Positions 53,654-59,628 of a stretch of DNA of 64,000 nucleotides are shown here, one piece after another. Every line of letters begins with the position of its first letter. Position 1 is the stretch's first letter. The DNA comes from Neoconidiobolus thromboides FSU 785 (taxonomy: Eukaryota; Fungi; Entomophthoromycota), in the NCBI GenBank assembly GCA_025603075.1, contig MU626263.1:170940-234939 (forward strand). The letters run 5' to 3'. The notes below the pieces were generated by a model. That model ran no database searches. It was given only the letters and a program-made list of their open reading frames with translations, and had not been told where the DNA came from. The position numbers were made by a program, and so were the translations under genes.

Positions 53654-54802
53654 ATGGTTTACTTTAATAACAAACTTTTCTTTTCTGCCCTTATTGTAGC
53701 TTGCGCTAATGCTGCTGAAAACGTGATGCAAATGACTCAAGCTACTCCAAGTGTAATTCCAAGTACTCAAGCTACTGTTAATAACATGCCATTATTAAAT
53801 AATATGCAACCTAATGCTGCTGGTAAAAAAGAAGAAAAGAGAGACCCATACAATGGAGGAGATGACTATAAAAAAGAAGAATATTCCAAAGACAATAAAT
53901 ATGAAAGACGTGGATATGGTGATTATCATGTCAAACATCATAATGACTATGATAATTATAGTAAACATCATAATGATTACGATAGCTATAGTAAACATCA
54001 TGATGGCTATGGGAAATCAAAATATGAAAGACGTGATTACGGTAATGATTATGATGGTTATAGTGAGCATCATGGATATGAAAGACGTGGATATGGTGAG
54101 AAGCATCATGATGATTACGATAGCTACAGTAGACATCATGGTGGCTACGGAAAACCAAAATATGAAAGACGTGGTTATGGCGATGATTACCATGTAAAGC
54201 ATCACAACGATTATGACGGCTATAGTAAGCATCATGGATATGAAAGACGTGGATATGGTGAGAAACATCATGATGATTACGATAGCTACAGTAGACATCA
54301 CGGTGGCTACGGAAAACCAAAATATGAAAGACGTGGTTATGGTGATGATTACCATGTAAAGCATCACAACGATTATGACGGCTATAGTAAGCATCATGGA
54401 TATGAAAGACGTGGATACGGTGACTACCATGTGAAGCATCACAATGACTATGATGGCTATGGTCAACATCACAAATACGAGAGACGTGGTTATGGTGATG
54501 ACTACCATAAGAAACATAATGATTATGATAATTACGGTAAACATCACGGATACGAAAGACGTAGTTATGGCGATGACTACCATAAGAAACATAATGATTA
54601 CGATAATTACGGTAAACATCACGGATATGAAAGACGTGGTTATGGTGATGACCATCACAAACACCACAATAGCTATGATAAATATGGGTCACACCATGAT
54701 AGTTATGACAAGTATGGGTCACACCATGGCTATGATCGACGTGATTATGGTAGCGGTTATGGTAATCATCATGACAAGTACGGATCTCATAGTTCTTACT
54801 AA
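53654..54802 (+). CDS. Secreted His/Tyr/Gly/Asp-rich repeat precursor with dibasic cleavage sites (Kex2-processed repeat protein-like), paralog 1
   Basis: Signal-peptide-like MVYFNNKLFFSALIVACANA; pro-region ending in KR; 11 Y[ED]RR sites delimit repeats such as GYGDDYHVKHHNDYDGYSKHHGYERR; intronless. Confidence 0.88.
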   Translation: MVYFNNKLFFSALIVACANAAENVMQMTQATPSVIPSTQATVNNMPLLNNMQPNAAGKKEEKRDPYNGGDDYKKEEYSKDNKYERRGYGDYHVKHHNDYDNYSKHHNDYDSYSKHHDGYGKSKYERRDYGNDYDGYSEHHGYERRGYGEKHHDDYDSYSRHHGGYGKPKYERRGYGDDYHVKHHNDYDGYSKHHGYERRGYGEKHHDDYDSYSRHHGGYGKPKYERRGYGDDYHVKHHNDYDGYSKHHGYERRGYGDYHVKHHNDYDGYGQHHKYERRGYGDDYHKKHNDYDNYGKHHGYERRSYGDDYHKKHNDYDNYGKHHGYERRGYGDDHHKHHNSYDKYGSHHDSYDKYGSHHGYDRRDYGSGYGNHHDKYGSHSSY

Positions 54803-54963
54803 GTTTGGAAATAAATCCTTATACTTCTTAAAATAAAGCATTGAGATATTTATATTATTGAATAATTTACAAGTTATACATATGTTTTTGAGGATCTAAG
54901 ACTATCTACTATAAAGTTATAGCAATTAACTTTAAAAAGTTTCAATGAAACAAATAAGAATAT

Positions 54964-55063
54964 TGGGAGTGTTTTTTTGGCTTCATTACTTTTTCCATTT
55001 TTTAAGCATTATTTGAGTGGAAAAATTATTAGTAAAATTCTTAAACGCAAAAATACATCCTTT
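54964..55063 (+). mobile_element. MITE family A copy
   Basis: TGGGAGTG...CATCC termini and consensus interior, 160 bp downstream of the repeat-precursor gene. Confidence 0.85.
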
Positions 55064-55439
55064 TATAGATTATAAAAAGAAATATTATGATAATTATAAT
55101 AGTCCTACTCCATATAGTTTGTATCATGGCTATAGTAGTTACAATAAATATGAATTTTGTGCTTTTTATTAAGTTAAAATATTGATATATAGAATAAAAT
55201 TTGATTATTTTTAATATTACAATAAAGTCATATAAATAGTCAATTAAAAATTATAAAAATCTAAAATATACAATAAACTTTTTAAATGGATCCTATTTAA
55301 ATTTCACTATTTTTAATAATTTATATATTAATGTAGAATATTGAATATTTTTAATTTTAAATAATATTAGAAGTATCTACATAACTTTAAAGGCATTAAA
55401 AAAGCTCTCAAAAACTTCTTATAGTTATTATCATCGTAT

Positions 55440-55740
55440 AATCCTGACTTGATATTTACGTTGGCTGGTTCTGTCTTTCTTAGCATCACAGCTGCTTACA
55501 CGAAATCAATATTCTACTCTTCCTCCTCCATCCCTCAGATTGCCATCTTAACATGCAAGAGCTCTTTCATTATTTATTATAATCTTCCAGATCCAAATCC
55601 TCTGACCCAAATTTCATAAAGATCCTTCTCTCTAAAGTCCTTGTCTCATTTTCACAGTAATTTCTTCACACTTTGAAGGATGCCTCTTGCTTTCAATTCA
55701 TCCATTCCTATCAGTTTTCTGGTTTAACTTTCATTTTTAC
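55440..55740 (-). mobile_element. Possible degenerate retroelement fragment
   Basis: Pyrimidine-skewed plus strand, richer in GC than the flanks, stop-interrupted frames; no diagnostic motif. Confidence 0.2.
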
Positions 55741-57789: not shown

Positions 57790-58041
57790 ATTATAGATTT
57801 AAAATAATAGTAATATTTTGAATCTTTTCTTATACCTTATTGTCCATTTTTTCAAATTTTAGATAAACAAATAAAATTAGTTTTATAATCTAGTCATATG
57901 AATTGTTTAATTGTATTTTTTAAAAGAGATGAAATTTATATATAACTAATCAAGTAGTAGAATTTGTATTAACATTTTTTATATTAATCAGAATATGTAG
58001 TCACTTTTTGACAAAACTTAAAGTTCTAAATAATCATAGTA

Positions 58042-58141
58042 TGAGGATGTATTTTTCTGTTCAAGAATTTTATTAATAGCTTTTCCACTTAAATAGCGCT
58101 TAAAAAATAGAAAAGTAATGAAATCAAAAAAAACATCCCCG
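58042..58141 (-). mobile_element. MITE family A copy
   Basis: TA-TGAGGATG...CATCCCCG-TA. Confidence 0.87.
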
Positions 58142-58692
58142 TATGGTTATTTAGTTAAATAAAATCATTTGACCTTATTGGGAATATTATAATCTCTATA
58201 CTAAATTAAGCTCCAATCGTAAGAAAATTAATTTTTCAGTATAATGTCTTATCAAAAATTTAAATGAATTGTGTATTATTATTAATTTCCAATTTTTTAG
58301 TTAATATTGAGTTGAATTAAAGTTATAAATTTGATATAAAAACGGCATAAAGTTGATTCTAGCTATACTATTTTAATAGATTTATTATTTAGTAAAATGT
58401 TAATAAAACATATCCGTTGTACTATTTTATACACGAGTTTATAAACCATTATATTTACTCCATCAACTTACTACATATTTTGACTTAATAAAAACAGATC
58501 AGCATTTAGAACATGTTAAAAATATAAACCTCGTGCTAAAAACAATGCCAATTTCAATAATGATCAATACACAACTTTTAAATTTAAATCCTTTAGTCTA
58601 ACGGATTTTTTTTAATAATACTATAAAAGATAATAAAGTTGACTAAAATTAAAACATAACAATTAGATTTATATACTAGACATCTCATCACC

Positions 58693-59628
58693 ATGGTTCA
58701 TTTTAAAAATACAATTTTATTATTTGCTTTAGCTATTGCTACCATTTACGGAGCTGAAAATGTTAATGTTGTAAAGGAAGCATTAGCTGCTTCTCCCAAT
58801 GGACTTAACGCAAATACCCTTCCAGCTACTGCTAAAAATTCAATGGCTAAATCAACTATGCCAGAATCGAAATCTGTAACTTCACTTACTAACATGTCAC
58901 TATTAACCAATGTATTACCAGGAGGTGAATCTAAGAAACCTAACTACGAAGATAAAAAAGAGTATAAACCAGAAACTAATAAATATAATGAAGAAAAGGA
59001 AGATTATAAGAAAGGTGGTGATAAAAAAGAAGATTATAAGAAAGATGAACAATATTCAAAACATCATGATGATTATGATAATGGCTATGATAAAGAATAT
59101 GATGATTATTCACCCAAATACCATAGTTATGATAGACGTAATTATGGTAATAATTATGGTAATAATTATGGACATCATCGAGGTTATAGAAGAAATTATG
59201 GAAGTAGTTATGCCAGTAACTATGGCCATCATCGTAATTATAGAAGAAATTATGGAAATAACTATGGCCATCATCACGGTTATATGAGACGTAATTATGG
59301 AAGTAGTTATGGAAGTAATTATAGTCATCATCGTAACTATAGAAGAAATTATGGTAATGACTATCCAAGTAATTATGGTCATCATTACGGTTATTCAAGA
59401 CGCAATTATGGAAATAACTATGGCCATCACCACGGTTACATGAGACGTAATTATGGTAATAGCTATGGCAATAATTATGGTCATCATCATGGTTATTCAA
59501 GACGTAATTATGGTGAAAAGAAGGGTGACTATAATGATTCTTATGGAAGTGGGGATGACTACAAACATAACAAATCAGATTATTCTAATACTTATGGTGA
59601 TGAAGGTGAAAAATCTTATAGTGATTAG
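58693..59628 (+). CDS. Secreted Asn/Tyr/Gly/His-rich repeat precursor with dibasic cleavage sites, paralog 2
   Basis: Signal-peptide-like MVHFKNTILLFALAIATIYG followed by AENV, as in paralog 1; 8 RR sites delimit NYGNNYGHHHGYMRR-type repeats; intronless. Confidence 0.87.
   Translation: MVHFKNTILLFALAIATIYGAENVNVVKEALAASPNGLNANTLPATAKNSMAKSTMPESKSVTSLTNMSLLTNVLPGGESKKPNYEDKKEYKPETNKYNEEKEDYKKGGDKKEDYKKDEQYSKHHDDYDNGYDKEYDDYSPKYHSYDRRNYGNNYGNNYGHHRGYRRNYGSSYASNYGHHRNYRRNYGNNYGHHHGYMRRNYGSSYGSNYSHHRNYRRNYGNDYPSNYGHHYGYSRRNYGNNYGHHHGYMRRNYGNSYGNNYGHHHGYSRRNYGEKKGDYNDSYGSGDDYKHNKSDYSNTYGDEGEKSYSD

Follow-up and report, generated by a model that had tools for sequence, protein, structure and literature searches.

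The 64,000-nucleotide (nt) stretch of Neoconidiobolus thromboides FSU 785 DNA considered here (assembly GCA_025603075.1, contig MU626263.1, positions 170,940 to 234,939 of the forward strand), to which we refer as the window, contains two intact single-exon open reading frames (ORFs), p1 and p2. Both encode predicted secreted repeat proteins laid out like precursors of the KEX2-processed repeat protein (KEP) class, and both lie on the forward strand, as do all of their parts described below. p1 spans 53654..54802 and p2 spans 58693..59628, stop codons included, giving products of 382 and 311 amino acids, respectively. The 3.9-kb gap between them holds the SRP54 gene (55901..57789, forward strand; Pfam SRP54_N/SRP54/SRP_SPB), which we treat as context outside the system. 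The original prediction, made from the letters alone, had described just this arrangement of two intronless, same-strand ORFs flanking SRP54. An in-frame stop lies 54 nt upstream of the p1 ORF, and both genes have a TATAAAA 70–100 nt upstream and an AATAAA 8–10 nt past the stop codon. Alignment of the two promoters revealed no clear common upstream element, AT-richness aside. No third copy was found in the window by tblastn of p1 and p2. An identical 311-residue model of p2 exists in the public annotation (GCA_025603075.1, scaffold MU626263.1). The sole public record of p1, in the ESM Atlas, begins at Met51 (window position 53804) and lacks the signal peptide, so its start has probably been mis-called; the full 382-residue product is absent from the assembly gene list, and p1 is thus probably mis-annotated or unannotated there.

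The two proteins open alike. Each begins with MV[YH]F[NK]N, continues with an 11-residue hydrophobic stretch and small residues, and arrives at AENV, which is common to both; AENV is preceded by MVYFNNKLFFSALIVACANA in p1 and by MVHFKNTILLFALAIATIYG in p2. The hydrophobic stretch (residues 8–18) has a mean Kyte-Doolittle hydropathy of 2.64 in p1 and 2.95 in p2, compared with at most 0.45 and 1.10, respectively, elsewhere in the proteins. By heuristic reading, both N termini have the makings of a signal peptide, with a lysine in the n-region, only one hydrophobic segment, and small residues at −3/−1. It is predicted to cover residues 1–20 in each case (53654..53713 in p1 and 58693..58752 in p2), with A-N-A ahead of the predicted cut in p1, in line with the −3/−1 rule, and I-Y-G before AENV in p2, where the prediction follows hydropathy.

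Beyond this point, the two proteins keep a common plan, in which a pro-region rich in Met, Asn, Ser, Thr, and Pro is followed by a charged segment of Lys, Glu, Asp, and Tyr, and the repeats come last. In p1, the pro-region (residues 21–63, ending EEKR) and a charged spacer (residues 64–86, ending YERR) together occupy 53714..53911, and the Lys-Arg that ends the pro-region is the only KR in the two proteins. The p2 pro-region (residues 21–149; 58753..59139) has a Ser/Thr/Asn/Met part and then a Lys/Glu/Asp/Tyr charged part that ends YDRR. The repeat array of p1 (53912..54799) comprises 11 units of the GYGDDYHVKHHNDYDGYSKHHGYE type, 16–39 residues long without RR, ten of which end in RR while the last reaches the stop. 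Seven units of the NYGNNYGHHHGYM type (13–17 residues without RR), all ending in RR, form the array of p2 (59140..59505), and an acidic C-terminal tail of 40 residues with a calculated isoelectric point (pI) of 4.45 completes the protein (59506..59625). The p1 array is also tandemly repeated as DNA, with periods of 162 nt (96% matches) and 75 nt. The composition of p1 is 16% Tyr, 13% His, 13% Gly, and 12% Asp; that of p2 is 15% Tyr, 13% Asn, 11% Gly, 9% Ser, and 7% His. Neither protein has a cysteine outside the signal peptide. Reading of both sequences upholds the shared N terminus, Met/Asn/Ser/Thr pro-region, and charged segment of the original prediction, and the residue counts agree with the differing repeat bodies it had noted, Asp/His/Lys-rich in p1 and Asn/Ser/His-rich in p2.

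Comparison of p1 with p2 by BLASTP with compositional adjustment gives an E value of 4e-27 at 34% identity. In the alignment, every one of the eight RR sites in p2 has an RR counterpart in p1 under the consensus HHGY.RR.YG, which matches the repeat grammar xYG...HH...Y(x)RR proposed earlier, and nowhere are the two genes better conserved at the DNA level than around these junctions (up to 80%). The adjusted E value together with the alignment of every p2 RR site indicates that p1 and p2 are true paralogues, beyond any likeness of composition, as the prediction of a paralogous pair had held.

Both genes appear to be transcribed at a low level. In X1, which must be an RNA run because SRP54 is spliced in it, contigs 100% identical to the window cover 53322–54095 and 54462–54740 for p1 and 58762 to about 59675 for p2, in each case at a depth of about 7, compared with about 1100 for SRP54; the p2 contig stops about 40 nt past the AATAAA. 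Immediately upstream of p2, X1 has a depth of 0 for 400 nt, a gap that evenly spread DNA carry-over would not be expected to leave. Pieces of p1 and p2 also occur in the RNA runs (X2, X8, and X9) of a related organism, at depths of 2–5 versus 100–200 for SRP54. Transcription was one of the checks that had been proposed for this locus, and RNA contigs, although of low depth, lie over both genes. A poly(A) metatranscriptome (X3) holds p1-like pieces, one at 54098–54249 that matches p1 identically for 152 nt and one at 54468–54750 that has diverged and shows a 116-nt repeat-length difference, which suggests that p1, or the copy of a close relative, is expressed in this environmental sample. X3 contains these pieces but no SRP54, which hints, weakly, that p1 expression may be higher outside culture.

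The behavior of the genes in near relatives was followed in DNA runs (X5 and X6), for which the list of substitutions is partial. The indels listed within p2 measure 3, 12, 12, and +3 nt and all preserve the frame, whereas the eight listed in introns and intergenic DNA, at seven places plus one intron pair (1, 1, 2, 1, 7, 1, and 1 nt), are not of frame length. Both 12-nt deletions drop one NYGx unit each and leave RR untouched, and none of the listed variants hits an RR codon. Substitutions listed in p2 are synonymous in eight cases and non-synonymous in four; for p1, the figures are 8 and 11, some of which may reflect repeat units aligned to a copy other than their own. We considered whether p1 and p2 could be chance ORFs in coding-like tandem repeats rather than functional genes. 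ORFs of 125–263 residues in other frames or on the opposite strand do overlap both repeat arrays, the RNA depth is low, and searches returned no homologues, all of which would suit such an origin. However, the frame-preserving indels and synonymous excess of p2 in related strains, the rightly placed promoter and poly(A) signals, and the RNA contigs that cover the genes where adjacent intergenic depth is 0 make this very improbable. The overlapping long ORFs, whether off-frame or antisense, are a side effect of the repeat periodicity, and p1 and p2 are genuine paralogous genes with weak transcription.

The distribution of arginine in the two proteins is striking in its regularity. p1 has 11 RR pairs (ten YERR and one YDRR), each followed by Gly, Asp, or Ser and then Tyr-Gly, and p2 has eight (Y-x-RR or YRR), each followed by NYG. 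When the residues of the mature parts were shuffled in 20,000 trials and RR pairs were counted, p1 gave a mean of 1.7 (maximum 8) versus the 11 observed, and p2 a mean of 1.2 (maximum 6) versus 8. RR pairs account for 22 of 25 arginines in p1 and 16 of 19 in p2 (38 of 44 overall). RR is kept in 19 of 19 units while the unit bodies have diverged between the paralogues to 34% identity, and it is written in synonymous codons (AGA CGT, AGA AGA, AGA CGC, and CGA CGT). As in classical precursors, no RR closes the final unit of either protein. Invariant RR in diverged paralogues, synonymous codon variation, the scarcity of Arg elsewhere, and a final unit without RR together favor the view that these pairs are real processing sites. 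Judging from the sequences, we put at slightly better than even the chance that kexin cleaves p1 and p2 into about 19 peptides of 13–40 residues.

In such a pathway, the 20-residue signal peptide would direct p1 and p2 into the endoplasmic reticulum and would be removed after residue 20. In the late Golgi, a kexin would then cut behind every Arg-Arg, and likewise behind the one Lys-Arg with which the pro-region of p1 ends, and a Kex1-type carboxypeptidase would trim off the basic pair. p1 would yield 11 peptides of 16–39 residues, rich in Tyr, His, Asp, and Lys, with calculated pI values of 4.3–6.4, plus a 23-residue spacer fragment. Because they contain four to eight His each, these peptides would be negative at pH 7 and positive at pH 5. 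From p2 would come seven peptides of 13–17 residues, rich in Asn, Tyr, Gly, and His and neutral to basic (pI 6–8.5), plus the acidic 40-residue tail. The predicted count of 11 from p1 and 8 from p2, or about 19–20, all Cys-free outside the signal peptide, is close to the earlier estimate of about 20 Cys-free peptides. The predicted peptides span 1.5–4.8 kDa, with masses of about 2894 Da for GYGDDYHVKHHNDYDGYSKHHGYE, about 3083 Da for GYGEKHHDDYDSYSRHHGGYGKPKYE, and about 1564 Da for NYGNNYGHHHGYM.

Several observations weigh against this account. RR is a poorer Kex2 substrate than KR, and the sites between the repeats are all RR. P4 is occupied by Tyr, Gly, or Asn, not by the aliphatic residue that is often preferred, and no STE13-type XA/XP dipeptide follows the sites of p1 or p2. 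The p1 repeats are young (162-nt units 96% identical), so RR conservation inside p1 alone says little. Expression in the RNA runs reaches only about 0.6% to 3% of that of SRP54, and the p1 RNA contig reaches back 330 nt from the ATG to the boundary of a dispersed repeat, so its 5′ end may not mark the transcription start.

It is possible that p1 and p2 are instead secreted and left uncleaved, the intact proteins serving a structural or adhesive purpose or forming coacervates on hyphae, conidia, or resting spores. The interacting residues would then be Tyr, Arg, and His (cation-π contacts, His-metal bridges, and possibly dityrosine), and RR would merely be part of the repeat. The weakness of RR as a Kex2 site fits this possibility, as does the extreme composition of the two proteins (Tyr 15–16%, Gly 11–13%, His 7–13%, no Cys), whose Atlas models are disordered, with a predicted local distance difference test (pLDDT) score of 0.46–0.47. 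Tyr/Arg/His-rich disordered proteins such as the His-rich proteins of squid beak and the mussel foot proteins do self-associate. Mature pI values of 7.0 for p1 and 9.1 for p2, with opposite unit charges, would suit a two-component material, and low expression in what were probably mycelial cultures would fit a product of the spore stage. However, Arg is almost wholly restricted to RR pairs that recur with strict periodicity where units meet, which a sticker role would not call for; no RR follows the last unit of either protein; and KR stands in p1 exactly at the end of the pro-region. We regard uncleaved proteins as the main alternative, an unlikely but by no means negligible one. Cleavage and a structural role are also not exclusive, given that the Rep1 peptides of Ustilago maydis are cleaved and then serve as surface material (PMC7329392).

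Database searches revealed no relatives beyond the pair. Neither protein matches Pfam, PDB sequences gave no meaningful match to either, and a word-indexed search of 5.8 billion proteins with the whole of p1 and residues 1–150 of p2 returned no match. In an exhaustive phmmer search of 1.84 billion representatives, p2 had a single match, P0001, which was rejected as compositional because it is DYGQ/DYGR low-complexity sequence without a signal peptide or the RR grammar. p1 and p2 are themselves absent from the large protein collection, so no self-match is expected, and it may also lack proteomes from the closest relatives. Metagenome contigs of the Joint Genome Institute contained no match to profile-derived patterns or to a degenerate HHGYERRGYG pattern. 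Neighbor scores in the ESM Atlas (0.73–0.80) fall within the range of shuffled proteins and can be taken as leads only; these weak neighbors include multi-peptide precursors of alpha-factor and apidaecin and, for p2, an MF_alpha cluster. Within the supplements of PMC6339444 and PMC7329392, which probably do not include the sequence tables, the motifs YERR, HHGY, NYGNN, YGHH, and KHH are absent. A search of the literature on His-rich proteins of Entomophthorales found nothing relevant. On these comparisons, p1 and p2 appear to be lineage-restricted. The original prediction had called the family lineage-specific and had recognized no described family in it, and the searches of Pfam, PDB sequences, large protein collections, and metagenome contigs give the same picture.

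In layout, p1 and p2 agree with the published definition of a KEP, which calls for a signal peptide, at least three repeats, KR, RR, or KK between repeats, and repeats that make up at least 15% of the length (PMC6339444). p1 has 11 units and p2 has seven short units and a tail; RR follows each unit but the last, far above the shuffled counts; and the repeats cover residues 87–382 of 382 in p1 (77%) and 150–271 of 311 in p2 (39%). One survey found 1,193 KEPs in 226 species (PMC6339444), and another found 7,878 in 1,345 of 1,461 fungal strains, of which 2,560 were without a homologue (PMC7329392). Zoopagomycota was the phylum densest in KEPs, duplication within a strain was frequent, and di-His and Tyr-next-to-Asp types had already been reported (PMC7329392). 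For Conidiobolus coronatus, the two surveys give counts of 11 and 19 (PMC6339444, PMC7329392). Given that KEPs are abundant and often orphan, an orphan KEP pair in this fungus is to be expected. p1 and p2 resemble the surveyed KEPs (Le Marquer et al. 2019, Umemura 2020; PMC6339444, PMC7329392) in layout, lineage specificity, duplication, and orphan status, but their sites are exclusively RR and they are similar to no protein searched. Compared with many KEP peptides, the units are long, and their content of His, Tyr, and Gly is unusually high. The assembly (deposited in 2022, judged by its accession) is later than both surveys. Thus, p1 and p2 are probably new lineage-specific members of the KEP class, not a new kind of system. 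The proposal of a Kex2-type precursor holds for the layout of predicted signal peptide, pro-region, and dibasic repeats and fails as a new category, and the phrase "candidate undescribed peptide system" was overstated, as this layout is the published KEP definition (PMC6339444, PMC7329392).

Among characterized systems, Rep1 of U. maydis has the same secreted repeat protein layout and is cut by Kex2 into many similar surface-material peptides (PMC7329392). Its peptides are hydrophobic or amphipathic, however, whereas the units of p1 and p2 are very hydrophilic and His/Tyr-rich and share no sequence similarity with it. The prepro layout is also that of Saccharomyces cerevisiae MF(ALPHA)1/2, from which repeated peptides are released by Kex2 and trimmed by Kex1. 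This likeness raises the possibility that p1 and p2 are pheromone-like KEPs whose peptides signal in mating or development. The layout has its archetype in the alpha-factor precursors, MF_alpha is among the weak Atlas neighbors of p2, and low vegetative expression would be in keeping with a pheromone. Yet neither protein has an MF_alpha match in Pfam, the KR-EA/DA spacer, or the STE13 signature, and what follows RR is G/D/S/N-Y-G, not the XA or XP of ascomycete alpha-pheromones. The predicted peptides are also more numerous and heterogeneous than those of MF(ALPHA)1/2. Two divergent paralogues with 19 differing peptides that are long, highly charged, of low complexity, and uneven in length would make unusual pheromones, and the gain and loss of four-residue units between related strains fits a receptor-specific ligand poorly. 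We therefore consider a pheromone improbable.

Gly/His/Tyr-rich antimicrobial peptides or multi-peptide precursors are known elsewhere, among them human salivary histatins, plant shepherins, and insect apidaecin precursors, and histatin-like peptides are freed at basic sites from a larger precursor, bind metal, and are sensitive to pH. The predicted p1 and p2 peptides are like these in being short, Cys-free, and His/Tyr-rich with HHGY-like motifs, a likeness of composition only, with no detectable homology; no histatin or statherin homology was found in Pfam or PDB sequences at E values up to 10. Histatins are cationic, whereas the p1 peptides are calculated to be net acidic at pH 7. A further parallel is offered by gam56 and gam82 of Eimeria, which are secreted, rich in Tyr, and first cleaved to small peptides that are themselves Tyr-rich and become cross-linked in the resistant oocyst wall; cleavage and a structural role can thus coexist. 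Eimeria is an unrelated organism, and its proteins are unrelated in sequence and have no known dibasic repeat grammar.

The genes around p1 and p2 bear on one more alternative, namely that they are precursors of peptides made on ribosomes and modified after translation (RiPPs) of the ustiloxin/dikaritin type, in which a Tyr core would be cyclized after Kex2 cleavage. The precursor layout of signal peptide and Kex2-delimited repeats is the same, Tyr is abundant, and in Dikarya, DUF3328 genes are a frequent link of KEPs of the Tyr-rich and di-His types (PMC7329392). However, Pfam detects no DUF3328, tyrosinase, or methyltransferase among ORFs of at least 150 residues in the window (short or intron-split genes could escape), and the neighbors are housekeeping genes. 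The repeats have no Y-x-I-x core and hardly any Ile, the units of 13–39 residues are far longer than known cores, and the dikaritin-type pathway has so far been described in Dikarya (PMC7329392). A RiPP origin is accordingly highly improbable.

The window as a whole is AT-rich (GC 22–39%) and has the character of eukaryotic DNA with intron-containing housekeeping genes. Besides SRP54, it encodes an RRM protein, a DIP2/Mug62-like protein, HEATR5/Laa1, an AAA ATPase, a class II tRNA synthetase, a homeodomain protein, and ankyrin proteins. SRP54 has three introns (56138–56198, 56604–56666, and 56816–56863), all GT..AG and spliced out in RNA contigs. Its C-terminal tail (57538–57759) consists of four tandem 54-nt units that encode GGGG-MPDMSxMMQxMM, and the related organism has an extra GGT (one Gly) at 57639 within it. 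Upstream of the SRP54 start, an RNA contig covers 55398–55744 at a depth of about 54 in X1 and about 12–16 in the runs of the relative; it contains no ORF of 60 residues or more and could be a long 5′ untranslated region or a separate non-coding transcript. Copies of a dispersed element of about 100 nt lie at 52967–53039, 53205–53301, 54964–55060, and 58044–58140, bracketing p1 and SRP54, with 73–97 nt matched at 79–96% identity in both orientations. Its word depth, 10^4–10^5 in DNA runs and 10^3–10^4 in RNA runs, points to a very high-copy family resembling miniature inverted-repeat transposable elements that is also present in RNA. Elsewhere in the window, a 382-residue ORF on the reverse strand (11523–12671) with several transmembrane-like hydrophobic segments, an Asn-rich tail, and no Pfam match may encode an orphan multi-pass membrane protein.

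If the peptides are released as we propose, their composition best fits extracellular metal binding or pH-dependent self-association at the cell or spore surface, given the paired His, the Tyr at every third to fifth residue, and the switch of charge near pH 6. Antimicrobial or host-directed activity is a weaker possibility. A more speculative idea, which we think improbable, is that the p1 peptides (acidic, with paired His) and the p2 peptides (neutral to basic, rich in Asn, Gly, and Tyr) are complementary, either co-assembling into a two-component adhesive or wall or blunting insect defense. In the former case, assembly outside the cell, on discharged conidia or resting spores, would be switched by pH or by Zn/Cu; in the latter, the peptides would chelate copper or act as decoy Tyr substrates for phenoloxidase. 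For early-diverging fungi, either role, if true, would be an as yet undescribed function of a KEP.

Overall, what we present is an annotated pair of orphan genes; it establishes no new principle. The organism that carries them is a reported insect-pathogenic entomophthoralean fungus, and to our knowledge no KEP product has been characterized in this group. If made, the p1 and p2 peptides would extend the KEP catalogue by a type that is rich in His and Tyr, free of Cys, and delimited by RR. Such peptides are easy to synthesize and to seek by mass spectrometry, so the pair could be a tractable case for asking what KEPs do in early-diverging fungi, whether as surface material, in metal handling, or in interaction with the host.

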